Shown here piece by piece: positions 1-58,281 of a DNA stretch of 64,000 nt. The DNA comes from Cycas panzhihuaensis (Eukaryota > Plantae > Cycadophyta), in assembly GCA_023213395.1 (NCBI GenBank), contig CM041465.1, positions 75,895,741-75,959,740 on the forward strand, written 5' to 3'. Within the stretch, counting starts at the first letter, position 1, and every line of letters starts with the position of its first letter. The notes beneath the pieces are model-generated. The model was not told where the DNA came from. It was given only the letters and a program-made list of their open reading frames with translations, and did no database searches. A program made the position numbers and the translations under genes.

Positions 1-115
1 GGCCTTCTTCCAGACAAGGCAAATCAAAAATGTCGATAGAACAAGTTGAAGCATAGGCAGAAGGGCCTTTATTACCCTTTGCCTAGTTGCAAACTACCTG
101 ATGAAGTTGCCAGGA

Positions 116-734
116 TTATTTGGTGGGAGGAGACTCCTGAGGAACAACCTTCATTTGCCCCTTATGGATGAATTTAAGTTGCCCCCATCGGGATGAGTAC
201 ACAGCTCCCATTTGGTTGAGCCATGGGCATCCAATCAAGAGGTTGTAGTCCATGTCTACATCGAGGACTATGATGTTGGCAAGGATATTTTTATCCTTGA
301 GAGTGAGGGGAATAGAAATAGACCCCAAGGGTGTCTTTTTTGCTACCGTTGTAGCTTTGACAATGCCATGGGGCTGGTTCAAGGGCCAATATGCCAAGGT
401 CTTGCATGATGCGCAAGGGCATAGTATTAATGGAAGAACCATTATCTACAATGGTCCTTCAAAGGGTGAATTCAAGTGTATCTATGGTTATGGTAAAGGG
501 GTAGTGCCATTGGCATTCCCTTTCATTAGCTAGGGGGAGAACTTTAGGATCGAACAAGATGACGAGCTCATGACTTGGGGCAACACCCAAGGCGTGAATG
601 GACACGTCAACTAAACCCAAAGTTTCTAAGAGAAAATTACACTGCTCAGGATAACTTCTCAAGACATCCATCATGGACATCCCCGTGGCCATGGTGTGAA
701 GCTTGTCAACGATGGAGAAGGGCTTTCTCTTCAT
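116..734 (-). pseudogene. pol: Gag C-terminus and aspartic protease of element L (frameshifted)
   Basis: RTIVDNGSSIN catalytic motif at ~424-460, DYNLLIGCPWL motif; homologous to 60780-61400. Confidence 0.85.
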
Positions 735-1193
735 GGTAGGTTGGGAAAGTACCCTTCAGAAATCATAATGACTGGGGCACATGGAAATAGTCTTAAGAAG
801 CATGGGAATTTCAGGAGGTGGGATTTCTAGAGGAGGATAGAGATGAGGAGTAGAAGAAGAAGCATCAGTTTCTTTTTTGGTTGCTTGGGACTAAATCAAG
901 ATATATAAGGGTGCGGTCTTAAGCATTTGAATGATTCTCTTTCCCTCATTTTAGGATTGAGAGGTGGAAGGAGTTCAATGGTAATTAGGGGAACTGGAAG
1001 AAGAAGAGGAATTCCTTATACCCTTCCCTTTAGCTTGCACAGGGCAAGGGTTGGGAGATCTTCCTCTATTTCAATTTCCCTTTTGTTGAGTGTTGCGATT
1101 GTATTCCTCATGTTTGGGGAAAGAATCCTTGTGGATGGGTTAGTTTAGATTAGGTCTAGATGCCCGTTTAGGGGAGGAGTCTCATCTAATGAT

Positions 1194-1593
1194 TTGATGG
1201 TGAGGGATATTAACTCCTTACCTCTAGTACCCCTCATCTCATGAGGTTTAGGTCCATTCCCTCCAGTTTAAAGGATGGATCTTTCTCCTTGGCAGAAGAA
1301 TTAAAGACCATTCTAATAGGCATATTAGTTATCAATTTCCTAAAGTATTGCCCTAAGTAATACCATCTCTTGTTTGATGCATTGGGAGTTCTTGAAATAG
1401 TTTCTTCACCCACTTTTACACTCTCTTTTGATTTGGATACCATGGCTGGTTATTTTTCCCATGCACTGAGTGATATGACACTATTTTACATCAAGATTAT
1501 TAAGGATGGCATCAATATCAAACAAGTTCTTATTGATGAGGGATCATCTGTTAATGCAATCCCTCTTCGTCTTATTGAGGATTTAGACGTTAC
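1194..1593 (+). other. Inverted ~400-bp fragment of a related Tat gag-end/protease inserted into gag of element L
   Basis: Reads GSFSLAEELKT...KQVLIDEGSSVNAIPL on the + strand. The flanks rejoin to match element C at ~60335. Short direct repeats atgat/atggt at 1189-1193 and 1594-1598. Confidence 0.75.
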
Positions 1594-3716
1594 ATGGTGT
1601 CTTTGGGATGCTAGGCCCTACATTGTAAGTCCTCATAAAAGCATTTCCCATGAACAGAACATCACTTCCTCTTTAAGGAAGAATTTGTCTTCCTTGTTTG
1701 AAAAGGTTAGGCATTACCACCCTTAGGGGTGCAACTTGAGAATTTTGATGAACAAATTTGTGGGAAGTGGGCCATGAAGAGGCTTGGAGTTTAAGCTCCT
1801 TCATCATACATTCAAAAGAATGTATGGCAGAGGTTAAGGGGTGCAAGTTGTTTTCTATCGGATGAGATGAAGACCTAAGAGGTTGTTAGATTTTGGTTTT
1901 GCGAGGTGGAGGAGGTACCTCATGCCATTGTGAGGACCTAAGAGGCTACTTAAGATCCACTTAGATCTCAATGGCCTCAAGAGCTAAGTATTTGGCTATG
2001 GCAGAGTTGCATGTTGTCACCCCCATCTTGAGGACTTCAACATGGACTTCAGGGTGAAGGGCATTGATAAAGAGATTTCTCTTTAATTCCTCAGGCAAAG
2101 TTACCTTCGTGGAGTAGAGAAGATCATGGAAGCATCTCACAAAGTCATGATTCATTCATTGTGACCTTGTTTAAGAGATAGAAGAGCCTTTATTCTGCTC
2201 TCGAAGGGATGAGCTATATCAAAATAATTAACAAATTCGTCAACGAGTTTTTGGAATGAGTGGATAAAGCATGATGGAAGGTAATAAAACCATTTAAGGG
2301 CATTGCCTTGAAGAGAGCATGAAAAAAGTTTCATTAGGATACAGTTGTATGCCCAATAATTGATACACACCATGGAAGAACTTCTAACATGCTCTGTTGG
2401 GTCTTCCAAAGAGGTCCCGTCGAATTTGGGCACCTCGAGAGGGTGTGGCAGTAAGTTCATTCTTAGTGCCTCGATGGATAGAGGGGTTGATCTATAATCC
2501 ATGATGGGGTGTGCCCTTGATTGGACCATAGGATCAATGAAAGATAGAGGAGGAGGTGGACAAGTTTACCTAAATCCTCCTTGGGAGACTTAGTTCATAA
2601 TGAGATACACAACTTCTCCCATTTGATGGGAGGGAACAAATCTCACATTTGAAGGGATAGGAAGAGGAGTGAATGGATATGAGGGACCCATCTCTCCTTG
2701 AGGACATATCCCTTGTTGAAAGGGGACTTGAGCAGGGGTGCCAAGGGAGGGGGCTTGCCCTCCTTGTGAAGGTTCTATATAAGAAGGAGAGTAAGATGAT
2801 GGAATAAAAGGGTGCAAAACTAGATTTTGCCCATATGGGCTACCTGTAGGTGGTGCGACACCATACGAATGCAAAGGATCCACTCCATAAATAGGAAGGG
2901 GATTCCCTTTATTGTGCCTCCATGGTTGGGAAGTGTACCCTAGGGGCACATAAAGGGAAGGATCCCTAGGTTGAGCTTGGGTATGTGTAGGGATTGGTCC
3001 TACGTGGCTAGAAGGAGGGGCATACATGGGTCCCCTAGATCTAACAAGAGGTGGATAGACTACGGTCGATTGGGACGTAGTCGTTTGGCTATGGGGAGGT
3101 ATGCTCAACCCAAGTTAGGAAGAGGGTATGGCTTGGGTGGTCCCCAAGGAACAAGGACCACAAGGAGAAGAAGATTCAATGGGAGATGCCCTTGTTATGG
3201 GTAAGGGAGTCGAACGAGATGGATGAGATGGTGTAGACGTGGAGGAAAGAAGCACTATGTATTGCAAGATGTTATCCAACCACTTAGGATGTGATTAGAG
3301 GCTAGCAGCTTGGAAGCACTAATTAAGCACTTCCACCACATCTACGAGAGGGGTATCCACCTGATCATACAAGGTTAAAGGTCCCTCATGTGAGGCAAAC
3401 CCCACAGGGTAGTCTTCATGAGGATCACCACAAGGATGATGATACTCCAAGGGAGAAGATGCTTCCACCTCATGAGTGGAGAGGTAGTGGACTTTGCGGG
3501 TGTTCATGGTCACTCGGGTAAAATATAGGATCATCACCCTCTTGGGTGGGCCCTTGGAAAGAAGTAGATGGTTGCTAGGATTCAAAGATGTAGTCATGAT
3601 ATACCTAATCTAAAGGAAATCCTTCCATGGTCGAATTAAAATCTGATGATGGAAGAGGATAGTAAGGATAGTCTTCCAATGAAGGAGGGAGGCCTCATAA
3701 ATGATGAGAACATCAT
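1594..3716 (-). pseudogene. gag: gag of element L (Pro/Ser-rich N-terminal extension plus retrotransposon capsid domain), degraded
   Basis: ORFs 1961-2155, 2152-2529 (VPKFDGTSLEDPTEHV...LQGNALKWFY), 2590-3108 and 3319-3597 match C ORFs at 58282-60262. Confidence 0.85.
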
Positions 3717-3870
3717 AACATACAAGTTTCTCCTAAAAATTGGAAGAAGGAAAAAAGAGATGATAAGATGCAAGCATTGAGGGTTGCCCAACGAATCGAG
3801 GAGAGCTACCAAAAGGTAGGTAGCACCAATAGATCAGGGAGAGGATGGATCCCCTTATTGGTGGGTCCTT

Positions 3871-3883
3871 AATATGGTCACCA
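3871..3883 (-). promoter_or_regulatory. Primer-binding site of element L (tRNA-Arg-like)
   Basis: Minus strand TGGTGACCATATT just after the LTR end; same motif at 55181-55193 (-) and ~58113 (+). Resembles the complement of the plant tRNA-Arg(UCG) 3' end as I recall it (TGGCGACCA). Confidence 0.65.
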
Positions 3884-3884
3884 A

Positions 3885-4987
3885 TAGAATCACACCTCTG
3901 GGGGGTCACTAGAATTATATGAGATCAAGCCAACATGAATAATAGATTTGTGGCTATGGACCTACAAGAGAAAGGGGTAGAGATCACCCACAAAAGACGT
4001 CTGTGCATCAAAACATAGGTTCGAGGACCCGCGACTGATGTACAAACTCTCTTTCAGGTAACACCTCCTCGATTCAAAGTTGGGAGTGAGAGAGGGTCTC
4101 CTTGGTTTCCTGAGTAACCTCAAAAAGGTCCCTCCCATCCCAGATGGCCGAAGGAGGGAGGAGAAAGTAAAGGTACACCTCTTCTTATGAAGAGGTGATG
4201 GGTGAAGTAGACCCTAACAGAAAGGTAACAAGCCTCACGTGTAGGCCTAAGACAATTGGCAGTGTCAGCAAGCAAAAGGGGAGTTGGAGCAATAGACTAA
4301 GTATAGGCTAAAGAGTATAACCAAGGAAAGTCTTGCTGGTAGGAAGGAAAGGTGATCTTGAGAGGAGGGACTTACAAGGCACCACACTTAAGAAGGTTCT
4401 AAGAGTGGGAGGTAGGCAAAGTGAGTTACCCGTATGTTTGTTTATGTTATGTGATAAGGAGATGTGGAGTGCAAGGTATCACATTTATGTTTGTTCCTTT
4501 TTAATGCAAGAAATGAACCTTGAAGGAAACAATATACTCTCTCTCTCTTTTTCCTAAGTGTGGCCTTACTCTCTTTATCTTTTACATGCAAAGAAAGAAA
4601 AGAGGACAAGTAAGTTACTGAGGAAATAAAGAGCGCAAATGAGAGATGTGAATCTACCCAATAATATGCAAGGAGGAGACAAAGATATACATGGATAAAT
4701 GCACAACCCACCTTGCCTAAACCCTGGTGGAAGTGAAGGTTTAGATAAGAGGAGGAACAAGTGTGTGTATGGTAGAAAGAAGAAACATTTATCGGTGTGG
4801 GTTGGCTAAATCACCACTATGCAACCCAAATGAGCAGGCAAGAGTAACTAATAGAATGCAAAGCAATACAATCTTTTCATCTTTCCTTTCGTTTAGGAGC
4901 ATATAAGAAGTAGGGAGAGTAAAGGGGAACAGTAAGAAAGATGAGGTAGGGAAATATACCCGATAACTTGGCATTTGGAGTAGCATC
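3885..4987 (-). repeat. 5' LTR of element L, 3' portion
   Basis: Lies between the PBS and the G insertion site; non-coding. Confidence 0.7.
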
Positions 4988-5823
4988 TGTTGGGGCATAA
5001 AGTGATCCTATGGCTGTTGGAAGACTAGAGGTAGGTCAGGTAATCTAAGATGTGCAGGTATAGACTGTACAGAGGTATGCACGAGGCAAAACAGTAAAGA
5101 AATCAGCATTCTAGGTATGTATGACAGGTGCATACTTAGAACAGGTATATACCATAGACACATACTAAGCGATTGGAATGGGCCCGACGTGGCGATACAC
5201 ATGACCCAAAGGGACTAGTGAAGGCCTGCAAAGTTGCCAGACATACGTACGAATGTACGAACCTAAAGAGATTAGTTAAAGTGCCTAACTAAGTGATTAA
5301 TGAAAGGGTACGTATGACTGAAGGGGTATGGTTATGACAGGCAGTCATAACCCTTCAGCCAAAAGGTACCAAGAAGAGTACTTAAGGAGGTACGCATGAA
5401 CCATCAGGTGAGGGTGAGAGCTGATTATCACGGGTACGCAAAGGTGCAGAAACCATCACATATGACAGCGAGTTGGAGCAGCGTTAAATGATAAGTACCA
5501 TCTGGGTATGCATATAATAGAAAGGAATGTATGCTGATGAAATGATGAGTATGCATTCCAACCTCTATGTAATTAAACTGATTACTTAATAAAAGGAAGA
5601 GTTACATAGAAAGATATGTGTTCTTTGTGTTATGATGATGAAATGTTGAGTATGCATTGAATTCTATGCTGATGTGTACCATTGTGGTATAATTCTGTGA
5701 AATATCTGTGGAACGTATGTGAATAACCATGTTGACAATATCCTGACTAGACTATAGCATTATGTAACCTTGACAAGTGTGGTTATCTCATAAGTGTACT
5801 AAGATACCCCTCAAGAGTCAACA
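4988..5823 (+). repeat. 5' LTR of G (836 bp)
   Basis: TGTTGGGGCATAAAGTG...CAAGAGTCAACA, repeated at 21069-21902. Confidence 0.96.
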
Positions 5824-5824
5824 T

Positions 5825-5836
5825 TGGTTCCATTGC
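5825..5836 (+). promoter_or_regulatory. PBS of G, tRNA-Glu-like
   Basis: TGGTTCCATTGC starts 1 nt after the LTR. It is complementary to ...GCAATGGAACCA, the 3' end of plant tRNA-Glu as I recall it. Confidence 0.65.
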
Positions 5837-6194
5837 TTACGTCCGTTGAGGAGGGACAGGGCCTAGGAGTTTCAAGGAGAGGAATGTGTAAAGGGCAGAG
5901 GACCCTGGCTGCTATCATGATAGCAAGCTGTAACTAAGCCACCGATAGCCAGGGGACCTTCCAATACCACCTAAGAGGCCTTCAAGGTCGGAAGAGCCCC
6001 AAAAGGATACTTCACATAAGGAGAAGGAAACTAGCAGACAAAGAGCATTAAGATGGTTAAAGGAATCAAAACTCAGAAGGGTGAGGAGATTAAGTTCACA
6101 GAACAATGAGACTAAGGGACAGTCTGTTGAAGGATCTGAGGCAAGTAGAGCCTAGACACCTCAAGAACAGGAAGAGGGAACTAATGGCAAATGT

Positions 6195-6974
6195 ATGGTA
6201 TTAACACCAGCCCCAATCAGAGATGATTTATTTAGCGCAAAAATTGAAGGGAAACCAAAAGTGGATGAAAAGCATCAAGAAACCTTAAAAGAGGGAAGTA
6301 TACATGGAGGACGATCAAGGACCCAAGTGACAGCGAAAAGAAGGCGGAGGAAGGTCCCTCGACATATTGGGAGAATAATCTCACAAGACAGCTTTTTAAA
6401 GATTCATCAAAAAAGGGATATGATCAATCATATATTAAAGTAACACCATTAACTATACAAGTGACAGGTGTAGTGGAACCTATACACATCAAAACTCCAT
6501 TTAAGAATCCATTGTTTGGAAAGGATAATACAATAGTAGGCACTCCAAGTGCATCCCCAAAGGAGGGGAGAAAGGAAAAATCACCACCAAGTAGGACACC
6601 ATTGCAATCCCTCAAAATGGATGATTATAGAGACTTTGGAAAATTGATTTTTAATGACACTTTAGAGGTAGCAGAATATGTATATCTCTTTTAGAATCTC
6701 ATTGATGTGGAAAAGATTTCAGATGAGGATGAAATCAAAGAAAATTCACCTGTATGTTGAGAGGAGTACCCTTGGCATGGTACAAAGAAAAGAACAAGAA
6801 TGAGCCATGGGAAAAGATTAAGAAAGCATTCGAGGAAAGATTTCAAAAGTTTTGTAGTAATGAAGCAGTGGAAATCGAATTGAGAGAAATCAAATAAAGG
6901 CTGGGAGAATTAGTACTAACCTACATTAGCATAATGAAAATCATTGCAGCCAACATGATTAACAAGATAATAAC
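6195..6974 (+). pseudogene. gag: gag of G, N-terminal and capsid part (split by the LINE)
   Basis: MLRGVPLAWYKE...WEKIKKAFEERF capsid motif at ~6750-6845. Removing the LINE restores IINKII-T-DHNIKNYFVRGLNE-type continuity (NMINKIITDHNIKNYFVRGL). Confidence 0.85.
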
Positions 6975-7486
6975 ACGATGAAGGCGACGAACCTGTGATC
7001 AAACGGACCTGCAAGTAAGCATTAGGGTTTCAAAGTGGCGGCAGTGGGTGAACTTGCATCGACCTGGGTGCGATGGCGTCCACTGTACAGACTTGGCCGA
7101 GGAGATAGGACCCTGCACAAGACTCATATCGTCTCCATAGAGGTAGCTGAGAAGGTATCTATACCATTAACAGAAGATTGGAGAGGCAGCCATTAGCGTA
7201 ACAGCTTGAGCACGCAGAGCCATCTTTTCTGGCTCTCTCAAGGTTGATTATTTTTGTGCAGCTCAGAGTTGAATGGGAGCCGTGAAGCAGATGCTGACTA
7301 CTTCTTGAAGTTAGACAGAACATTGGAGAAGACCGATTGGAAAGGGAGCCATTGGGAAGGTGTTTCTCTAGTGGAGCTTCTTGGCATCAAGAAATTGAAT
7401 ACAAAGTTAGCAGTCGAGCAGGCTTTTACCATGGTATGCATATACACTTTTGGCTGGATTTTCCTTGCTAGTTTTGATATTTAATC

Positions 7487-8899
7487 ATGATAATGGATCA
7501 TATCCTTCAAAACCTGACTCAGATCCCCAACCCGTCTTTGGGGAAATCTTACCGAGATGCTCTGAAACCAAACGAAGAGGAATCCTTTGACATAACGCCA
7601 GTAATTATTGACAATAAAGTTAGATTGAAAATACTTATAGCCCTTGTGGAAAGAACTGAGAAACTCTAGGAGAATTGCTTAGTTGGCAGGTTCTCAGGAC
7701 CGAGACCAGGTCTAGAGATAATCAGAAGCTAGACGAGAGCCAAATGGAAAACGACGGGAAGTGTGGAAGTAATAGCCATGCCCAAGGGTTGTGTGTTGTT
7801 CAAATTTTCCTCTTACGAGGATATGTCCAGTATCTTACTTAGGACGCCATGGATGTTTGGCCGGAAAGCCCTATCACTTGAGAAATGGCACATGGACTTT
7901 GATCCCTCTACTCCCAAAATTAAACAAGCCCCCTTATGGATCCAACTCCCAGGTCTCCCATTGCATCATTAGAACCCAGAAGTTTTTAGGGGTATAGTAA
8001 AGGCGGTGGGTCCTCTTTTAGCTGTTGATTCTGTGATGAAGAATAGGAGTAGGCTTATCAATGCTAGGATCTATGTTCTAACATGGCTCGATAAACCCCT
8101 CCTGGACAATATCTGGATGGATTTGCCAGATGAGAGTTGGGTGAAACCATTGATTTATGAAATGGACCACATAGGATGCTCCACATGCAAAATATTGGGG
8201 CACTTGCCCCAAACATGTCCAGGAATTAAGCCTTAATCAGAAGAGATTAACATGGGACCCCCTAAACCAAATGCTCGGGAAAAAAAGGAAAAGGGCTAGG
8301 AGTCAGTCCCAGAACTTGAAGGGCACATGGTGGAAGCTGAGATCCCTATTGGGAATTTGGATTTCGACCCCAATGAAGAGGATACGCTCTTATAGGAAGG
8401 AGAGCAAATTGCACATATTCCTATGGCTCTGGGTAGCCAGGCTGGCAAGGCGTGTATAGGGGTCTCTTCCCCTACTAGGATTATTGCCAAGACACAAACT
8501 ATTCACCCTGAATCACTACGGGGGAGGGATAAACAAGTTGCGAAAAGGTTAAGTCTATCCCCTACCAAAGAGGCTGATGTTATTCTTAGTGATTTGGAGG
8601 CCCAAAGGCAAAAGGTTGGGGTCGTGGAGTCAACGCCCATAGTGGAGGACCTAGGGGAGCCAGTCCCAGACCCAACACCACAACCGACAATGAATTTGAA
8701 AACGCAGCTGGAAATGGGAGCTGAGAAGAAGGTAGGGAGGCCACCTCTAAAGCTCCTAAGAGAGAAAGAAATGGCTACACAGGTGGACCAAGGTAGCCAG
8801 AAAACTCTAAAGGAAGTGTTCCTTAAAGGGCCTACCCTTAGATCCATCACTATAGTTAAAGAGCCTCCAAAAGGAGAGCCTGTTGAAGTTTGGAAGTAA
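7487..8899 (+). pseudogene. ORF1: LINE ORF1 (DUF4283/RRM-like region plus CX2CX4HX4C knuckle), in-frame stops
   Basis: One frame across ORFs 7487, 7763, 8006 and 8423; motifs PWMFGRKALSLEKW, PLWIQLPGLPLH, CSTCKILGHLPQTC. Confidence 0.92.
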
Positions 8900-8910
8900 A
8901 GGAAAAAGAG

Positions 8911-11900
8911 ATGAAACTATTATCCTAGAATATCAGGGGTCTCAATGCCCCTTCGAAGCAGAGGATTATGAAGGATATGCGAAATAAATACCTTCTAGAC
9001 CTAATTCTCCTACAGGAAACTAAAATAAATAAGGAGAATGGCCAAAGGGTCAAAAACAAAATTTGGAAGATAGCTGATAGTATTGAGGTCGCCTATGCCC
9101 AAGGAGCTGGGGGATTAATGATCCTATGGGACCCGTTGACATGGTTAGGAGATCTTTTCCTGGCAGAGGGATCTTTTATATCGATTCAGCTTACCAATAA
9201 AAGCAACAACCTATCATGGATAGCCACAAATGTTTATGCTCCAAACAATCAAGAGGCCAGGAAGAATCTTTGGGGCAGGCTTTTGGAGGCACACATGGAT
9301 TGCCAACATCCATGGCTGTTGGCGGGAAACTTTAACTCAACACTGTCCCTGGGTGGCAAGAGAGGAGGTATTAGTGGATGGACAACCAGTATGGGAGAAT
9401 TTAGTGAATTCCTTCAGCAGGGGGGTTTGGAGGATGTTAAGCTCAGAGGGGCCTCTTTTACCTGGTCTAACAAGAGATTAGGGAATGATTTAATCCAAAT
9501 TAAATTGGACAGGGCGCTGGTTAATTATGACTGACTGAGGAACTATAGTGACTTCTCCCTTGAGGCGCTACCGAGGATTAGTTCTGACCATTGTCCTCTC
9601 CTATTCCAATTTTCGGCTCCAGGCAAATACATTGGATCCCCCTTTAGGTTTGAGCTAATGTGGCTTCGACATCCCAATATTAGGAATAGGATCAAGGAAT
9701 GGTGGCAAACTCAAATTAAAGGTCACGCAATGTACAGATTTTCGAAGAAGCTTGATTGGATTCAAAGACAAATCAAGGCTTGGAATAAGGAGGTCTTCCA
9801 AAATATTCATGAGCAGAAGGATAAAACCATTAGTGATCCGAAGGCTATAGAGGATAGGATTGAACGTTCCAGCAAACACCCAAAGATAGACAAGATAGAA
9901 AAGGAGCTGGTTGAGAAGCTGGACGAGATTCTTATTAGAGAAGAAATTCTCTGAAGGTAGAAATCCAGGACTCTTTGGTTGGCGGAGGGGGACAGGAACA
10001 CAAAATTCTTCCATATGACTACAGTTAGGCATAGAGCTAGTAATAGAATTTCTAGCCTTCAAACGGAAGATGGTTCAATTGTTAGTTCTTTAGAGGGCAT
10101 GAAGGAGTTGGCTAGCGATTACTTTAAGGATCTATTCACTGAACCCTAGGTCAAGGATATGGATAGTAGAAAAAACTTTTTAAACAATATCCCCAGGCTG
10201 GTGAATAAAACTCTAAATGCCCAGTTGACTACCCCGTTTACTCTTGAGGAAGCCAGGGCGGCCCTCTTTAGCATGAAGAAAGCCAAAGCTCTTGGCCCTG
10301 ACAGATTCCCTCTGGGCTTTTTCCAAGAATATTGGGATATTATTAAAGAGGATCTAATGGAAGCTTTGCAGGAATTCTACACTAATAAAAATATGTTGCA
10401 GGAATGGCAATCTACATTCCTTGTCCTTATCCCCAAAAAGAGGGGCGAAAAGGATGGATGAGTTCCGTCCTATCAGTCTCTACAATGTCAAATATAAGAT
10501 TTTAACCAAGGTCCTTGTCAACAGGCTGAAGAGTATCATGCCAAATATTATCTCTCACAACCAGGATGGGTTCCTTCGTGGCAGGCAGATATATGATGGT
10601 TATATTATCATCCATGAAACAATCCACTCAGCTGTCGAAAGGAAGGAGCTAGCTATGCTTATCAAGATCAATCTCACGAAAGCCTTTGATAGAGTTTCCT
10701 GGGAATGCTTGCTAGATTACATGGAGGCTTTTGGCTTTGGGGAACATTGGCGAACCTGAATCAGACTGTGCATTGGGAACCCATAATTCTCTGTTATTAT
10801 TAATGGTTCATCTTCTAAGTTCTTCCCCGATTTTAGAGGATTAAGGCAAGGAGATCCCCTCTCTCCCTTCCTATTTATTACGATGGCTGAGCTACTGGGC
10901 AGAACCCTGGAGTCCGCTAGGAGGCCGGGGTCCTTAATCAGAATTAAATCAACGTCGGGGGTGGGCAATATGGTTCACCATCAATTTGTTGATGACAATA
11001 TCTTCCTTGGTAAGGCGATAGTTAGAGAAGCTTCCATATTCAAAGATATCCTGGGCCATTTTGAGAAGGCCACGAACCAGATGATTAGTCTTAAGAAGAG
11101 TAACATCTTCTTCATAAACACCTTGGGCTATATCCAAGGCAGGATCAGCAGAATCCTAGGTATGGATATAAAAAAGCTTCCCACAATTTACTTGAGTCTG
11201 CCCCTATTTGTTGGCAAGATATCCAAAGAAATGTGGAACCCTTTATTAGACAGAATGCAAAGGAAACTAGCAGGCTGGAAAGGAGCCCTTTTGAGCTTAG
11301 CTGGAAAACTCTAGCTAATTGCCTCTACTCTCCAAAGTATTCCAGTGTTTTGGATGTCCATTTTTAGGGTCCCGCAGGCCATCTTAGACATTATAGAATC
11401 AATTCAGAAAAGATTCCTCTAGTATGGCTTAGAAAGCAAAGATAGGATTCATTTGGTGAGTTGGAGCAAAGTTTGCACCCTAAAATGGGCTGGCGGCCTC
11501 AATCTACGGAGGCTCTCACCTTTCAATATCACCCTTGGGGCAAAGCTCAGGCAGAGATTGTTCAAAGGTGGAGAGAGACTTTGGGAGAGGATCCTCTCTA
11601 GAAAATATATTTAGGGGGGCTCGCTTTTGGAAAGTAGTGTATCGTTGGCTGGCTCCATTGTCTGGAGGAGCATCCTCAAACCATGGGCTACTATAAGGGA
11701 TGGACTAAAATGGAGACTAGGCGATGGCAATTCCATAAGATTCTGGGATGACGTGTGGTGTTGTGATAAGGCCCTGAAGGAGTTCCCAGACCTGGTGCCT
11801 CTGATGGGTCCTTGTGTTAGGTAATACTGTAATCTGATCAAAGATTACTGGACTGGGAGAGGAGGAAGCAGGATCTGGAGGAATTTTGAGGATATCCAAG

Positions 11901-13106
11901 GGATAGGCAGTCTGCAGGGGGGTCTCAATAAGATCAAAAGGATCTTAAGTAAGAGTTATATCCCTAGAACTCTGATGCAAGATTCAATGGTGTGGCCCTC
12001 TAGCTCGTCAGGGGAATATACAGTGAAACAGGGCTATCAATACTTATGCCTAAAAAGAGGGGACATAAAAAACCCAATGCTGGAAGGCGTTTGGAGGCTC
12101 CCCCTCATTTCAAAAATAACTCTTTTCTGGTGGACCTGCCTTAGGAACAAAATCCTCACTGTGGACAACCTTCAAAGGTGTGGGTTTATGTTGGCTAACA
12201 GATGTGTCATATGTTGCAAGGGGGAGGAATCCATTAATCACATCATCTTAGAGTGCCCTTTCATAAGGGAGATTTGGAGGATGCTGCTTGGAAAACTTGA
12301 AGTGTGTTGGACCTCATCCTGAAAGACTGCTGACCTATGGCTAGTATGGCAAAGCTCATTCAAAAGTAATACCTTCAGCTGCATCTAGAAGAACATGCTC
12401 CCGATTTTGGCATGGAATATCTGGAAAGAAAGAAATAGTAGGATTTTTCAAGGAAAAGAAAAGGATCAGATGGGTGTTTACAACAAAATCTGTTTAGACA
12501 CTAGAGAAAACATTGGCAACACTAAAGAAAAATGCTTAACCCTGCCAAAAAATAGGATTTTGCTCAAATGGGGAATAGAACCTGAATTAGTAGCATCCAA
12601 ATCTAGAAGCACCAGATGGATTCCCCCCAGTGGAGCCATGGATTAAAATCAATTTTGATGGGGCTGCGAAAGGGAACCCTAAGGAAGCTGGGGGTGGAGG
12701 AATCTGTAGGGACTATAAAGGTTCCCTCATCTGGGCCTTTGCGGACTACTATGAAATCCAAACAAATAACTACACGGAGATGCATGCTATGTTTAAAGCC
12801 CTTGATATTGCCCGTGAAGGGGGCATCTGGAGATTGGTGATAGAGGGGGACTCTGGGGTTGTTTTAAATTCGCTAAAAGGAGTGGCCCTCACGGATTGGA
12901 AATTTCAGGCTATAATCATTGATGCCAAAGAAATCATTAAGGGTCTGTCGGATGTCTGTATAAGATACACTCTGAGAGATGGCAATAAAGCAGCAGATTT
13001 TTTGGCAAACTGGGGGGTGAGGAATAAGAGAGGGCAAGTATGGAGATGTGATTTCCCTAGGGACCTTCTGGCTCTGGTTGAGAAGGATATGACTTGCAAT
13101 AGCTAG
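8911..13106 (+). pseudogene. ORF2: LINE ORF2: APE endonuclease - RT - zf-RVT - RNase H; stops and two frameshifts (~10440, ~12625)
   Basis: MKLLS*NIRGLN, LQETK, SDH (endonuclease); FRPISLYN, GLRQGDPLSPFLF, HQFVDD (RT); CVICCKGEESINHIILEC; KINFDGAAKGNP...GNKAADFLA (RNase H). Confidence 0.95.
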
Positions 13107-13274
13107 CTGTGGGGCTTGTCTCGGCTTCCTAGTTCTCTTGCCTATTCCGTGGGGTTATCACGGTTAACTTCTGTCTTAGTACACTCTTGTTTTCTGATGT
13201 ATTAGGTTACGGGATCCTGTTTTCAAACCCACTTTAATTCATTTTACCTTACCAAAAAAAAAAAAGACAATAAC

Positions 13275-14100
13275 GGACCACAACATAAAAAACTATTTTG
13301 TGAGAGGTCTGAATGAGAAATTAAAAGCCATGATGCATGCTCATCCATTGAAATCATTTAAAAATGCCCAAGATCTAGTGTTGGATTTTGAAATGGAGAT
13401 GGATACATAGGCAGGAGGACAGGATTCCCTGTTACTGAGATTATAAGATGAGATTAGAGAACTTAAACAAAATTAGTACAACTGACCCTTCTGCCAGGTG
13501 GGGATAGCAGAAGAGGAATTAGAGTTGGAAGCTTTAACGAAAGAAGTGGCTAGATTAAAAATCAGAAATAACCAAGAAGAAGAAGAAACAATGAAAAAGA
13601 AGGACCATGCTGGAAGAATAGCCAAATGGTGCCATATCTATGAAGAGAATTCACATACCACTAAAGAATGTGAATTGAATTTAAAAAATAGTGCATTGCA
13701 CCAACATGACAGATGGTGCTATACATGCGATATAGATACACATACGACCAAGGACTATTTCTATAATCCCAGAGGAAAGGCCTATAGAGGACGAGGTAGG
13801 GGAAGGGGAGGCAACCCACCTCAAAATGTGTACACAAGGAGGGGCACACAAGAGCCCTCGAGGAAAAAACCACCAATGGGTAGATGCCTCATCTGTTTGC
13901 AGTTTGGGCACTAGAATTCAGAATGCCCAACAAAATAGGAATACGAACAGAAACCATTTGTATGTAATAACTGTGGCCCAAGTGACCATAAAATGAATGA
14001 TTGCAAAGGAAAGGCCAAAGCCACCAACTTGATGATGATTATACCAGAAACCAAAAACTTCAAACTCCAAAATAAACAAAAGGAAAAACTAAATGAAGGA
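13275..14100 (+). pseudogene. gag: gag of G, C-terminal part with four zinc knuckles and an RG-rich tract
   Basis: YFVRGL; CHIYEENSHTTKEC, CYTCDIDTHTTKDY, CLICLQFGH*NSEC, CNNCGPSDHKMNDC; RGRGRGRGG. Confidence 0.85.
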
Positions 14101-14469
14101 TATCTGAATCCACCAATAGAAATGGATCGATTCAAAAAAGTAAAACAAGTATTGGATGGCCTAGTCTAGGAAGAGAATATATTACCGATAGGAAAACCAG
14201 AGACTGAGTACATATACATATGGAAGAATAAATAGAAAGAAAAAGAGAATCTACCAGAAGAGCCTAAGGTGCAGCCACAAATGGTGCAAATGGAGGAACT
14301 CTTTAAAGGATTGCCAGTGGAAGACATTCCAAGAATGCTACTATTGATGGAAAATTTGGTCAAATAGCTACAATTGACCATCCCCCTATACCAAGTTATT
14401 GATTAGATAAAAGGAGTATTACAACATGGAATTACAAAAAGTCTAAAGCAAATAATACCATCATTTGAT

Positions 14470-14850
14470 ATGGATCCGATGGTAACAATGACAGTCTTGC
14501 GAGAAATATTCCCAAGAGTAATCATTGATGGAGGCGCGGCAGTAAACGTATTACCAGCTTCGACATGGCAGAAACTGGGAAGCCCAAAGCTGGAAGTGGT
14601 GACCTATTTATTGAAATTGGCCAACGAATTACTGGTATGACTTATAAGGAGATTGGCCGACATCAATGTGGATGTGGTAGGGATAGTAGTGAGAATTGAC
14701 TTCACAGTCGTAGAAATAGAGAAAGGGGCAATGCCCTATCTAGCACTCTTGGGAAGGCCATGGTTATACAAAACACAATGCCTCCAAAATTGGAAAAATA
14801 TAACCTTCACCTTATCAGATAACAGAAACAAAGTAGTATTACCGATGCTA
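14470..14850 (+). pseudogene. pol: Aspartic protease of G
   Basis: RVIIDGGAAVNVLP and YLALLGRPWL. Confidence 0.9.
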
Positions 14851-15530
14851 AGAAGAAGCTCCATCGAAATGATACCAGATGAGGGATCTAGCACGACGGT
14901 CACGAGTAACACAACATTTTCTTCCATTGGGGAAGAACATCTCTATCATATGGTGGAAGGGCCCACCACTTCAACCAATTATCAGTAAGAAGAACTGACC
15001 TATTTTGGGGAAATATACAACTCCTCGGATGATGAACACGGAATGAGGTTTGTGGATTATTGGCTACAGGATGCATATGAAGTAAACTCTTCTTCTTATA
15101 GATGTAATTTATTATCTAAATATGTAACTATAAATATTGACAATAATTCAGATTCTTTTGAGTATATGATGATTAATGATAGTTTAAGGGATGACAACAA
15201 ACTAGACCAACAAACCCCTAGTTTACCTAATATATTTTATAGTTTTTTAGTAGCTAATAGTAATCCCAACATACCTTCTACATTAGGCATGGGTCATGAG
15301 GTAGATTCCCTACCCCCCCCCCCCCCTTTTTACAACCTGAGAAAGGAAGTAATATTCCTTCCTCCTCTTCCTTATAAGTATACCTACCTAGTACCAGATC
15401 CCTTCCAACCATTGGCGCCAAAACTAGGGAAATGGAAGGAGGATCACTGGTAAGTACTTCTAGAGATCCTAGTCTAAATAGTAGAATTATCATCCCAGAA
15501 GAAATAAACCATCAAATCTATATTGGGAAG

Positions 15531-15971
15531 TATGTTAAGCCTTTTTACGGAGAGCAGTTGTATGGGACTACCCACTTAATGCATTGTGTTGAATATTGGA
15601 TGGAACATGGGAATTGGGATAAAACCCAATGGCAACAAGACTTAGTATTAACCTTATGGGGAAAAACTTGGTATTGGTACCTAGCCCACCAAGCCATTCT
15701 TAAAAATTGGAAAGAGTTACAAACGATGTTTCGAATTTGGTTCAATCATCCAACACAACTAGCCACTCCAATATTCTATGTAGGTCAAAATCCTAGGGAA
15801 CACATACAAAAGTGTAAACAAAAATGGATATCTTTAAGTATACCTAAATAACATTGGCCTAACTATTTCTACCATACCCTGAGAAGAGTAGCAAAGGACT
15901 AGTTCCTCGAAAAGGAGCAAAGTTTAGATGTGACATGGGGAAATTTAAGGAAATCCTTCATAAAAACCTTT
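15531..15971 (+). other. Two tandem Gag-capsid-like modules in the pol frame between PR and RT
   Basis: Module 1 (15531-15743) and module 2 (15765-15971) share P/F..H..C...W....W....TL....W....W..L...F...F and are in the RT-RH-INT frame. Confidence 0.65.
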
Positions 15972-16199
15972 AGGCATACCTTTGACAATAAAGAAATAGA
16001 TAGAATCCTAAAACATATTAGATTAATGAGTATAAAACTAGAATAAAACCTGATAAACCAAGAGGAGGCAGAATCAATACATAGTGAAGAAGAAGAAGTT
16101 ATGAATTACCCTACAGAATTTATAGAACTCAATATTGGAGAAAGGAAGCTAAAAGATGCTCTGGGACATAAAACTGAAAATATAGAAGATGTGGATATA

Positions 16200-18992
16200 A
16201 CTAAGTTAAAAATTACATAGATTAATGTTGGTAGTAAGGATAATCCCAAATTCATACAAATTGGAAACTATTGGGATCATCAGACAGTAGCAGAATCCCA
16301 ACAGTTATTTGAAAAATTTCGCAACGTATTTGCATGGTCGTATAAGGACCTTAAAGGCATTCCTCTAGAGATAGGAATGCATCACATTAACTTAGTGGAA
16401 GATGCAAAACTGGTAAAATAGAGGCCATACCAGATGAATCCTAAATATAAAGAAAAAATGAAGGCTGAACTCAACAAAATGTTGGAAGTGGGTTATATTT
16501 ACGAAATCAACTACAGTGACTGGGTGAGCCCTATAGTGGTAGTTCCTAAGAAGAATGGGAAAATTCATGTCTATGTGGACTATATACAGCTAAATAAGGT
16601 AACAAAGAAGGATCCATTCCTGTTACCTTTTACAGAGGATATTCTAGAAGTAGTTAGAGGAAATGAGATTTACTCCTTCACTGATGGATTCAGTAGGTAC
16701 AATCAAGTATAGATTACCCTAGAGGATCAAGCAAAAACCATATTCGTGACAGAATGGGGAACATATGCATATAAAGTGATGTCATTCGGTCTCACGAATG
16801 CACCAGCTACATTTCAGCGGATTGTAATCAATATCTTTCAGAAATTTATTAGAGAAAAAGTTATTGTATTCCTAGATGACTGGACATTGTATAGGTTAAT
16901 GAAGGATCACATGGAGAATTTGAGGGAAATGTTGCAAACATGCCATGAAAACAAGTTATGTCTTAGTCCAGAAAAATATACCTTCCTGGTACCCTTCAGA
17001 AACTTATTAGGACATATAGTCAGCAAGGAAAGATTACTGACAGATCCAGCAAAGGTATCTACAATTCTGTACTTCCCTACGCCACTTATGAGAAAACAGC
17101 TGAAAGGTTTTTTGGGATTGATGGGATACTATAGAAAGTTCATTAGGGGGTATGCATACATATCAGGACCCCTGGAGGAGCTATTAAAAAAAAACATTGA
17201 ATGGGCATAGATGAAGGAACAGTAACAAGCGTTTGAAACATTGAAACAAGCTATCGTAGCAGCACCTATATTACAATTTCTAGATTGGAAGAAGACTTTC
17301 CATATGCATATGGATGCGTCGCAATACACTATTAGATGCATATTGGCACAACCCACTGACAACAAGACAGATCATCCAATCTACTTCGTTAGTCGAAAAC
17401 TCACAAAAGCCGAGCAGAATTACACAACGATAGAAAGAGAAGCACTCTGCATGGTATACGCATTGCAAAAATTTTGACACTATCTATTGTCAAATCCATT
17501 CTTATTTTTCGTCGATCACCAAGCGTTGATGTATTTGGTGAATAAAACGATCATGCGAGGGTGAATCAGCAGGTGGTTGATGTTGTTCCAGGAATTTTCT
17601 TTTAAAATCATTATGAAACCTAGTAAAGCCCATATCATTCCCGATCGATTGTCGAGAATTACAAATGGAGAAAAAGCCACAGGGGTACCAAATGACTTTC
17701 TAGACGTAGCTCTATTCAGTATGGAAGCAGTTCCAATGGACTGGTATGAGGGAATACTAGAATACTTAGCGACTAGAGAAGTATCAGCAGAATTGGATCG
17801 CATGGGAAAAAGAAATTTTATCAGAAAAGTGGAGCCATATCAATTGATCAATAGAGAATTATAAAAATTGGGGCCAGACAAAGTGTTACGACATTGTGTT
17901 CAACCATACGAGATAAACCAAATCATGTCACAGGCACACGAAGGAGTAGCGGGTGGCCATATGGGGAAATTGGCCACATGGCTGAAAATTTTGATGTTTG
18001 GATTCTAGTGGCCATCCATGTTTGAGGATGTCAAGAAGTGGATTCAAGCTTGTAATTATTGCCAGTGGATTGGGAAACCCAATTGACAGGATTTCCAACC
18101 TTTACATCCCATCTTACCTTTGGCACCATTTAAGAAATGGGGACTCGACTTCGTGGGGCTAATTAAACCAACTACTCATCGATCGAAAACTTGATACATT
18201 CTGGTGGCAACTGACTATATGACAAAGTGGATAGAGGCATGAGCGTTACGAAAAGCCGATGCAGAAAGTACAGTGCAATTTTTGTATGAGGTAGTAATTA
18301 CATGATTTGGATGCCCCTTGGAGATTGTAAGTGACCAAGGCACCCACTTTCTAAATCAAACTATCAAAACACTAACATTTGCGTTTATGATTAGCCATCA
18401 CAAATCTACTCCCTACTATCTGAGAGCAAATGGCCAAGTGGAAAGTTCAAATAAAATAATCAAGAATTGCATGAGAAAGATATGTGACATCGGAAGATCT
18501 GATTGGGCCGAGAAATTACCATCCGTGTTATGGACATTTTGAATGACATATAAGAGATCAACTGGACAAACTCCATTCTAGCTTGTGTATGGCAAAGAAG
18601 CCATTCTTCCAACGAAATTTTAGATACCCACTCTACGAGTTGCTATGCAATGTTGATTGGATGACTTCCAGTCCTTACGACAGTGATTGGAAGATTTAGT
18701 ACGATTAGAAGAAAATCGACACATGGCAAATTGGTTGCAAAATGTGGAGAAGCAACGACAAAAAGCATGGCAGGACCGTCATTTATGAAAACCTCAGTTC
18801 AACGAAGGTGATCAAGTGCTACTATATGACAAAAAATTTAAAATGCACCCAAGTAAACTCAAGATACGGTGGTTGGGACCATACATCGTAGAAAGAGTCT
18901 TCAAGAATGGATCGGTGTAACTTCAAGAAATCGATGAACCCTTGCTACCAACTCGGGTAAACAGTAACAGACTCAAACCATACATTGAGTAG
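16200..18992 (+). pseudogene. pol: RT - RNase H - integrase of G (single frame, many stops)
   Basis: WVSPIVVVPKK, DGFSRYNQ, FGLTNAPATFQR, VFLDDW; MDAS...EREAL; HEGVAGGH...CNYC, WGLDFVG, SDQGTHF, NGQVES, WLGPY. Confidence 0.96.
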
Positions 18993-19279
18993 CCTAGCTT
19001 ACTAGCTGAATCAGTTGGTTGTACCATATTGTATTGCATGAAGTTGAGGCACAATCAAATACCTTGATACCGATCCATGATCTAGTTTAGTATGGATACA
19101 AAAAAAGAGAAAAAAAAAAAGGAAAAAAATAAAAAACAACTGTAACTCATCACGGACATAAGTAGTAGCATTAGTAATTGAAAAAATCAGAGGAAAAATT
19201 AAAAGCATACAATCAAAATACATTATATGCCATCGGTATGTTACTGTGCACGTAGCTAAAAAAGTGATCAAATTTAAAA

Positions 19280-19620
19280 AATACACTATACATACCAAGG
19301 AAATACACTCCAATATGTACAGTTCAAAAAAAATGACTCGAAATCACACTATACGTACCTAAAAAGTACGTAGTTAGGAATGCATAGTGTAAATAAAATT
19401 TAAATTACTCAATTACATTATACGTACCTAAAAAGTATGCAAGCAGGTATGCACAGTAGAAAGAGAACTAAGTTAAACAATTACAATGCACATACCAAAA
19501 AAGTATGTAGTCAGGTACGCACAGTGGAAAATAAACTTAAGTACCCAGTTATATTCTACATACCAGAAATATACATAATCGAGTACGCACAATGGAGACA
19601 CTTAACACTATACGTACCAA
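19280..19620 (+). repeat. Degenerate ~69-bp tandem array in the 3' region of G (~5 copies)
   Basis: ATACGTACCTAAAAAGTA-type unit at 19351, 19420, ~19489 and ~19557; partial copies at ~19285 and 19610. Confidence 0.75.
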
Positions 19621-19886
19621 TGACATGTATAAGATAAAAATCTGAATATGACAAAGTATTACGTACCTACGAGCATTCCCGCGAAGCACGCAGAGCGGAA
19701 CAGATAAATCAACTCCGAAAAATCTGCCAAGTAACCGTACAACATGGCACATAAGAAAATTGACTCCAGTACATATCTCAATATAGAAAGTCACAAAAAT
19801 GACAAGCATTCCTTAAAGGTACACATGTAGGGTTCCAGTTTATACGCTTAGGTTATTTTTCCTATCTCTGGGACTCGACAGCCATT

Positions 19887-20959
19887 ATGAGGATAGCAGG
19901 ATGCCAAGAGGCATTTATACCAAAGCTCAAGCAAGAGTTACAAGCCCTACCAGCTCAATTCTAGACGAGGGTTAAGTAAGCAGGATGGGGAGACTATATT
20001 TACTATAACCCAATGTATTATAACCCTAAACTTATGGACCAAATCCTGTTGGCACTGAAGGAGGATAGCAGGAAGGCAAAAATAGATGCAAACATAATTC
20101 ATACCATTACCAAACTTCTGAATGAAGGAGAAATTCCATTGGGAACAAAAAGGTTAGAAGTTGACTAAGAAATGTGGTTAAGAGAATTGTGTCAACCAAA
20201 TATTGAGATTATGTCTGGTGGAATCTATGTAGCAGACATTATTGATGTTAGAATTCAATGGGTGGCAAAAGTGATAAATTCCAGATTTTTATCTAAACAG
20301 AAGTAACATACATCCAGGGAGGCATGATGTAGGTGTTGTTGAAAATTTAGGATGTAAAGAAACTGAATTGGTCTGAATTCTTGGCGGAGAACATGAGGTA
20401 GCAACTAAAGGAGATTAGGACACATCCATTCTGACATCCCTCCTTGCTATTAGCTATCTTGTTCTATTAGTGTCCAGATGTGTAGCTGACCAGGACCACT
20501 ATTTCTCCACGAGAACCTATTATCCAATAGTGGGTAGCAGAATTTCCAAACACAGTGAATAGCCTGGAAGCAAAGAGAAGGGTACAAAAACAAATGCAGA
20601 AAGTACTTACCTGGTTATAGAAGACACCAAGAACACCCATTCCTCATCAAACAAAATAGGTTGTCCATAGAAGAGGTAAGAGGAAGAAGGGAGAAGAAGA
20701 ATCAGAGGAGGAGGAAGAAGAAGTAGAGGCCTCCTGGGAAGAATGGGAAGACTTCCCTCAGGCAACAGAGGCAGGGGAACCCTCAGCACCTCCTACACCA
20801 CATGACAAAGCAAGACCAATAATTTGGTTAATTCAAGAAATGGAGGAAGGGTATAAAGCTGAGATAACTGCCCTTCAACACAAAATTAAAGAAAAGGATG
20901 CTATCATTGCCACTCTAACATAGATTAATGAAGAAATTTTGGGAGGACAGAGGCAGTAG
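19887..20959 (+). pseudogene. Degraded extra 3' ORF of G (~355 codons; acidic and coiled-coil C-terminus)
   Basis: Reading through stops and one frameshift gives MRIAGCQEAF...IDANIIHTITKL...IYVADIIDVRIQWVAKVI...LNWSEFLAENM...EEESEEEEEE...YKAEITALQHKIKEKDAII. Confidence 0.65.
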
Positions 20960-21068
20960 CAGCTACCTTGAGATAGAGCGAGGAGGGAATACAACCTAAA
21001 TTTTGAAAATTTTTTGGAGTTTTGTTGAGCAAGGATGCTCAAACCCATAACTATTGACCCGTGATAGA

Positions 21069-21902
21069 TGTTGGGGCATAAAGTGATCTTATGGCTGTTG
21101 GAAGACCAGAGGTAGGTCAGGTAATCTAAGACGTGCAGGTACAGATTGTATAGAGGTACACATGAGGCAAAATAGTGAAGAAATTAGCATTCTAGGTACG
21201 TATGACAGGTGCGTACCGAGAACAGGTACGTACCATAGACACGTACTAATGATGGAATGGAATCAAACGAAAGTAGTACGCACGACCCAAAGGGACCAGT
21301 GAAGGCTTGTAAAGTTGCCAGATGTATGTACGGATGTACGAACCTAAAGAGATTAGTTAAAGTGCCTAACTAAATGGTTAATGAAAGGGTACATATGACT
21401 GAAGGGGTACAGTTATGACAGGCAGTCATAACCCTTTAGCCAAAAGGTACCAAGAAGAGTACTTAAGGAGGTACATATGAACCATCAAGTGAGGGTGCGA
21501 GATAATTATCACAGGTATGCAAAGGTACTAAGCCAAGACGCATGACCCGCTTGGAGCAAAGATTGAATGATAAGTACCATCTGGGTACACATGTAACAGA
21601 AGGAATGTATGCTGCTGGAATGCATTCCTATGCATTCCAGCCTCTGTGTAATTAAACTGATTACTTAATAAAAGGAAGAGTTACATGGAAAGCTGTGTGT
21701 TCTTTATGTTATGATGATGAAATGCTGAGTATGTGTTGAATTCTATGCTGATGTGTACCATTATGGTATAATTCTGTGAAATATCTGTGGAATGTATATG
21801 AATAACCATGTTGACAGTATCCTCACTAGACTATAGCATTGTGTAACCTTGATAAGTGTGGTTATCTCATAAGTATAATAAGATACCCCTCAAGAGTCAA
21901 CA
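21069..21902 (+). repeat. 3' LTR of G (834 bp)
   Basis: Direct repeat of 4988-5823. Confidence 0.96.
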
Positions 21903-58111: not shown

Positions 58112-58281
58112 CGCGACCATCTTGGGGCGCCGATGAGGAGCTAGTCTCGCTCTCTTCGGTTGGTTTCGCTACTGTTGTGTGATCCTTTTCATACTTATCT
58201 TGATTTCCACGTTGGGCACCCCCCCCAACGCGTGTGTTTTACCGCTTTTTCTCTTTTCCTAACATTGTCGGTTGACCTTGC

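Follow-up and report, generated by a model that had tools for sequence, protein, structure and literature searches.

Probable gag-derived capsid N-lobes in tandem between protease and reverse transcriptase of an old Ty3/gypsy-type retrotransposon in Cycas panzhihuaensis

Overview

The stretch of Cycas panzhihuaensis DNA analysed here (64,000 nucleotides; hereafter the window) contains an old, dead plant Ty3/gypsy-type LTR retrotransposon whose pol region probably carries two gag-derived capsid N-lobes in tandem, between the protease (PR) and the reverse transcriptase (RT). The two modules are homologous to the N-lobe of gag and follow one another in the reading frame that also encodes RT, RNase H (RH) and integrase (INT), and their open reading frame was kept up to the same degree as that of RT–RH until the element inserted. 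The two-module unit recurs in two distant lineages and the junction of PR with module 1 recurs in one other copy. We prefer an explanation in which these gag-derived N-lobes act as a handle by which Pol contacts Gag, and on balance we consider that explanation as a whole to be probable. Its structural and evolutionary part, which was obtained by sequence comparison, is the firmer one; its functional step, taken by itself, is tentative.

Organization of the host element

Positions 4988–21902 (16.9 kb) are a single LTR element that was inserted as a unit, as follows from the LTR pair and its near-matching 5-bp flanks. The two LTRs are 88% identical over 840 nt (blastn), with 90–93% identity in ungapped blocks, and the 5-mers that flank the pair (Table 1) constitute a near-matching 5-bp duplication. 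An LTR pair with TG...CA ends, a near-matching target-site duplication and the order PR, RT, RH, INT identify the element as Ty3/gypsy-type. Its complete order is LTR, gag, PR, linker, N-lobe, N-lobe, a stub resembling a C-lobe helix, RT, RH, INT and LTR. The first-pass annotation had placed the real gag of the element at about 6640–6845, and its motif was located at 6733–6894. The gag N-lobe is now separated by 9 kb from the rest of the element because a LINE was later inserted into gag, splitting the C-lobe. This LINE has Pfam matches to Exo_endo_phos (8929–9531) and RVT_3/RNase_H (12594–13103) and terminates in a poly(A) tract (13253–13266), with a target-like motif duplicated on either side; a DUF4283-like ORF1 lies near position 7733. 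Between INT and the 3′ LTR is an untranslated region of about 2 kb, which contains a tandem repeat (19342–19569) with a 68-nt unit in 3.3 copies (73% match).

The peptides of both modules were found in the RT/RH/INT frame exactly as they had been quoted by the first-pass annotation, and its placement of them inside pol is borne out by the PR upstream in frame 0 and the RVT_1 match downstream (Table 1). Each module shows the same spacing, with a P-x-F-x-G start followed by L-x-x-x-A-x-x-W and then by W-x-x-#-x-x-x-F-x-x-x-F. The insert does not amount to a complete Gag: module 2 is followed only by about 24 residues that resemble a C-lobe helix, then by an acidic linker and RT, and no CCHC zinc knuckle is present in 15972–16300. 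Pfam searches of the PR–RT interval (14989–15450, 15378–15848, 15903–16043 and 16050–16217) found no RNase H, the sole RH being the usual one after RT.

Table 1. Features of the retrotransposon and of the LINE inserted into it, in window coordinates
Feature	Position	Strand	Remarks
5′ LTR	4988–5823	+	TG...CA ends; preceding 5 bp GCATC
Own gag N-lobe and first C-lobe helix	6617–6894	+	Broken by stops, passing from frame 1 to frame 0; translation, hhalign
Secondary LINE splitting the gag C-lobe	6985–13266	+	EEP endonuclease, RT, RNase H, poly(A); junction sequences
Remainder of gag C-lobe and CCHC zinc knuckle	13267–14166	+	Frame 0; weak zf-CCHC and zf-CCHC_4 matches (13939–14166)
Aspartic protease	14407–14985	+	Frame 0; one stop (14638–14640); motifs DGGAAVNVLP and LLGRPWL
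Post-protease linker	14989–15330	+	Frame 0; 114 codons without a stop; kept in P0004
Frame-2 leader 5′ of module 1	15300–15530	+	Stop at 15375–15377; kept in P0002
C14 T5 homopolymer run	15313–15331	+	Coding frame passes from 0 to 2
Module 1, capsid N-lobe-like	15531–15743	+	Frame index 2; free of stops
Module 2, capsid N-lobe-like	15765–15971	+	Frame index 2; stops at 15849–15851 and 15900–15902
Remnant following module 2, similar to the first helix of a C-lobe	15972–16043	+	Similarity to gag stops here
Acidic stretch and pre-RT linker	16047–16300	+	Frame 2; stop at 16218–16220
RT, RNase H and integrase	16300–18989	+	Frame 2; many stops; Pfam and translation
RVT_1 (RT)	16713–17207	+	Pfam; frame index 2
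RT_RNaseH_2 (RNase H)	17226–17474	+	Pfam; frame index 2
Integrase_H2C2 (integrase)	17865–18005	+	Pfam; frame index 2
3′ LTR	21069–21902	+	TG...CA ends; following 5 bp ACATC

Relatives and conservation of the insert

When the translation of 15378–15848 was compared exhaustively by phmmer with 1.84 billion representative proteins, five matches were obtained (P0001 to P0005), of which P0001 is a Ginkgo biloba gene model, P0002 and P0004 come from Logan contigs and P0005 from an ENA contig. The remaining match, P0003 (773 residues, 12 matching stretches), is a low-complexity tandem-repeat protein and was rejected as a relative. Both modules are present in tandem in intact open reading frames in a Ginkgo group (P0001, P0006, P0007 and P0011) and in an ENA group (P0005, P0009 and P0010). 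In all, intact two-module frames were found in at least nine Ginkgo gene models and in one ENA cluster; the Ginkgo models include Gb_07360, Gb_36233, Gb_36189, Gb_13097 and Gb_26725. The two groups are about 30% identical to the window and, in the alignment, the W, F, H and C core positions are invariant. Searches for further homologues with the window piece gave nothing new, those with P0001 gave only Ginkgo paralogues and those with positions 150–340 of P0004 gave only P0004 itself; no related loci were found in metagenome and viral contigs. No intact polyprotein containing PR, the modules and RT was recovered from the protein databases, and the Ginkgo and ENA two-module unit may belong to gag instead of pol. 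In one Ginkgo model (P0012; Gb_26725), a long low-complexity region rich in Asn, Gly and Gln immediately precedes the acidic leader and module 1, which hints that the context of the Ginkgo unit may differ from that in the window.

Two copies of the same family were found, P0002 and P0004, both of them fragmentary. P0004, which lies on another contig, has one open reading frame that runs from PR through linker sequence into the start of module 1; it is 80.6% identical to 14281–15129 and then 56% identical to 15486–15602, the start of module 1. Its protease region matches Asp_protease_2 and gag-asp_proteas with E values of 5e-4 to 9e-4, under the gathering score. P0004 is without 15130–15485 and, after the start of module 1, jumps to the C-terminus of the integrase, where it is only 35% identical; it is therefore a rearranged copy. 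An Ogre-like intron was considered for 15130–15485 and rejected: the boundaries in the window offer no usable donor/acceptor pair that would keep the P0004 reading, so that a deletion variant is the likelier of the two. The 3′ half of the segment missing from P0004 has a homologue in P0002, residues 16–109 of which align with 15339–15605 at 44.7% identity (tblastn) and cover the leader and the start of module 1.

In frame 2, the insert (15300–16220) has five stops in 307 codons, compared with seven in 560 for RT–RH and 12 in 363 for INT. Stops make up about 9–10% of codons in the other frames, and in composition shuffles the number of stops averaged 22 and never fell below eight. Since its stop density is that of RT–RH, the insert was as much a coding sequence as RT in the progenitor. 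Together with the open reading frame of P0004 and the leader and module 1 start of P0002, this stop density indicates that the insert is not peculiar to this one copy.

We consider the most likely origin of the modules to be a partial duplication of the 5′ region of gag, or template switching, into the PR–RT junction, after which the insert would have been carried as translated sequence by transposing elements. The alternative that competes most closely with a Gag-contacting role starts from a similar event and makes the insert a neutral passenger, in which a partial gag duplication in a permissive junction is translated and idle and hitch-hikes with a successful element. In favour of such a passenger, Ty3 can transpose without the junction domain that lies between its PR and RT. 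Very few copies were found, one existing copy (P0004) has the region partly deleted, and the PR–RT junction tolerates non-essential or acquired domains, as in the extra RNase H of TatII elements (PMC6317226). On the other side, an idle insert of 150 residues would be expected to decay or vanish over the distance that separates the window, Ginkgo and the ENA cluster, yet the two-module frame is intact in relatives of about 30% identity with the W, F, H and C core retained, and the stop density of the insert equals that of RT–RH. We therefore regard an idle insert as possible but rather doubtful, and we weakly favour a Gag-contact handle over it. Even if the modules are passengers, the PR–RT junction would still be a recurrent landing site for acquired domains.

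Homology to the capsid N-lobe of gag

The modules were recognized as gag-like in two ways. The first leads through P0001, which was matched by the window piece with a phmmer E value of 3.3e-9 and which itself matches the Pfam family Retrotrans_gag (PF03732) with 25.5 bits against a cut-off of 24.1; P0011 matches the same family with 40 bits in two stretches, so that both Ginkgo proteins are above the gathering score. In the best stretch of P0001, module 1 lies on profile positions 1–48; in that of P0011, module 2 (residues 141–176) lies on positions 5–43. The second way is the direct match of the modules to the N-lobe profile of the element's own gag, described below. The proposal that the modules are homologous to retrotransposon gag is thus upheld. 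The module pieces of the window itself stayed below the Pfam threshold: the 157-residue piece encoded by 15378–15848 had no match above threshold, and 15903–16043 gave a weak match to Ty3_capsid (profile positions 69–112 of 198, E = 0.015).

Pairwise Smith–Waterman comparison of the two modules of the window was without significance (z = 0.6). Separate profiles were built for module 1 and module 2, with X at the stops of the window, and compared with hhalign. The module 1 profile aligned with the module 2 profile in register over 65 columns with a score of 34.7, which none of 200 column permutations reached (9.4 ± 2.2, maximum 17.8). Against the N-lobe of the element's own gag, module 1 scored 33.5–33.6 (reached by none of 200 shuffles) and module 2 scored 17.1–17.5 (reached by two of 200). 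The gag of a second element, on the minus strand of the window, served as an independent comparator for both lobes. The N-lobe and C-lobe scores were 33.5 and 8.5 for module 1 and 17.5 and 8.4 for module 2 with the own gag, and 23.8 and 6.6 for module 1 and 19.0 and 8.4 for module 2 with the minus-strand gag. The C-lobe scores of the modules are thus at the level of the null (about 9.5 ± 2). In addition, 15903–16043 aligns without gaps to 6733–6894 of the own gag (BLASTP E = 1e-4), in a run that continues from the last helix of the N-lobe into the first helix of the C-lobe. The higher N-lobe scores and this continuous run indicate that module 2 consists of an N-lobe followed by a C-lobe stub.

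The same comparisons bear on a different partition of the insert, namely that it encodes one bilobed capsid in which module 1 is the N-lobe and module 2 the C-lobe, the two being alike by their ancient shared fold. Module 1 ends at a distance from the first helix of module 2 that does resemble the interval between canonical N-lobe and C-lobe, and an insignificant second HMMER domain placed module 2 on a helix of the Arc C-lobe. We nevertheless consider a single bilobed capsid unlikely: module 2 prefers the N-lobe to the C-lobe in both gags, matches the module 1 profile from end to end, is assigned to the N-lobe half of Retrotrans_gag in P0011 and is itself followed by a stretch that resembles the first C-lobe helix. 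The reading as two N-lobes stands, with modest evidence for module 2, and both assignments are predictions from sequence profiles.

Among all PDB sequences, those most similar to the family profile over module 1, and to P0009 alone, were Arc N-lobe constructs with E values of about 0.04, which are sub-threshold. The four-helix fold of an N-lobe was looked for by modelling. AlphaFold2 models of P0011 and of window positions 15507–15848, calculated from eight-sequence alignments only, are all-helical with a pLDDT of 49.5, and a Foldseek search of the PDB with the first of these models (pLDDT 49.5) gave matches only at E > 1, which were disregarded.

Possible function of the Pol-borne N-lobes

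In capsids of the Ty3/Arc type, the N-lobes form the capsomer rings and the C-lobes bridge the rings. As N-lobes build these rings, N-lobes borne by Pol could dock Pol to the rings of Gag. We suggest, tentatively, that the extra N-lobes, either within Gag–Pol or in a Pol product, would make N-lobe-to-N-lobe contacts with Gag and that such contacts might hold the RT-proximal part of Pol at the shell during assembly. If the modules do bind Gag, they would represent a natural experiment on the recruitment of Pol into Ty3/Arc-type capsids and an example of N-lobe-only proteins that interact with capsomer rings.

A variant of this suggestion, which we hold to be improbable, is that Gag–PR ends in frame 0 near 15450 and that a separate or frameshifted product, comprising the two N-lobes, RT, RH and INT, enters the particle by means of its own N-lobes. 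If true, the element would be a Ty3/gypsy element with a packaging handle carried by Pol, in parallel to retroelements that package Pol without fusion to Gag.

The contact with Gag could also be inhibitory. By analogy with Ty1 p22, the protease would free a protein made of N-lobes only, which would join capsomer rings and, because it cannot bridge them without a C-lobe, would poison assembly and so control copy number. In Ty1, a Ty1/copia element, p22/p18 is a C-terminal Gag fragment made from an internal transcript; like the modules in the window, it represents part of a capsid protein and is supplied by the element itself, and such a protein could either disturb assembly or contribute to it. 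The modules have neither a C-lobe nor a zinc knuckle, which, we infer, is the composition to be expected of a fragment that caps a lattice. This function is nevertheless quite improbable. The modules differ from p22 in being N-lobes, not a C-terminal Gag fragment, and in their location in pol. The insert lies in cis in its own pol, and every Gag–Pol would accordingly carry the inhibitor at a fixed ratio; furthermore, no evidence of separate expression, of an internal promoter or of cleavage sites was found.

Frame change at the homopolymer run

At a homopolymer run of 14 C and five T (Table 1), coding switches from frame 0 to frame 2. Frame 2 opens at 15300, before the open stretch of frame 0 closes at 15450, so that the open stretches overlap, and a heptamer of the X XXY YYZ type is situated within the overlap at 15324–15330. 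The sequence downstream of the heptamer folds into a weak hairpin (z = −1.2), which is no better than in shuffles. An indel, an error of assembly or a programmed −1 frameshift may account for the frame change; in a homopolymer run such as this, either of the first two is as possible as the third.

The frame change at this run, a fall in GC content near 14 kb and the location of the real gag 9 kb upstream are all compatible with a one-off chimera, a nested second element or an assembly artefact, in which the gag-like stretch would be the start of another element beside a truncated one, but we consider this very improbable. The gap of 9 kb is accounted for by the LINE, which ends in a poly(A) of its own; the element has just one pair of LTRs, flanked by the near-matching 5-bp duplication; a protease is lacking in the interval from the modules to RT; the open stretches of frames 0 and 2 overlap; and P0004, on another contig, has PR, linker sequence and the beginning of module 1 in one frame. 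The single reading frame of P0004, the LTR pair and the stop density of the insert together argue against both a one-off event and a nested second element, and for the gag-derived insert as a component of this element.

Comparison with known systems

The motif spacing of each module is shared with the canonical capsid N-lobe of Ty3/gypsy Gag, as represented by the N-terminal half of PF03732, the Ty3 capsid N-terminal domain and the Arc N-lobe. In contrast to the canonical N-lobe, the modules are situated in pol downstream of the protease, are doubled and lack a full C-lobe and the nucleocapsid zinc knuckle; they are also very diverged, the copy in the window being under the Pfam thresholds.

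A non-enzyme segment of the polyprotein at the PR–RT position is also found in Ty3, where the J domain (about 10 kDa) lies between PR and RT. The insert in the window resembles the J domain in position and in being non-enzymatic, but is larger (about 17–25 kDa) and contains two capsid N-lobes; to our knowledge, no capsid homology has been reported for the J domain.

Neumann et al. (2019; PMC6317226) described an additional RNase H (aRH) between PROT and RT in Ty3/gypsy elements of the TatI and TatII types from club-mosses and gymnosperms. Like the insert described here, the aRH is an acquired, lineage-specific domain at the PR–RT junction of Ty3/gypsy elements of non-angiosperm plants; unlike the aRH, the insert is gag-derived and gives no RNase H signal in 14989–16217. 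The first-pass annotation had mentioned a single similar insert in conifer elements. No such insert was found, and the reported gymnosperm insert between PR and RT is the RNase H of TatII (PMC6317226). In the full-text literature searched, including PMC6317226 and a 2026 survey of Tat elements, we found no description of a gag-like or capsid-like domain in pol, which is no proof of novelty. Chromodomains, a second RNase H and dUTPase are examples of additional domains in pol that mark the adaptation of LTR-retroelement lineages, and a pol domain derived from the capsid would be a new item among them.

Neighbouring sequence

The minus strand of positions 1–4987 contains the second Ty3/gypsy-type element from which the comparator gag was taken. 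Its gag is canonical, with the N-lobe at 2436–2221 followed by the C-lobe, its protease lies near position 300 and the element extends beyond the start of the window. Downstream of the host element, the window is AT-rich between 24000 and 56000 (GC content 0.25–0.35), and the final segment, from 56000 to 64000, is GC-rich (about 0.5) with several open reading frames of 120–220 residues.
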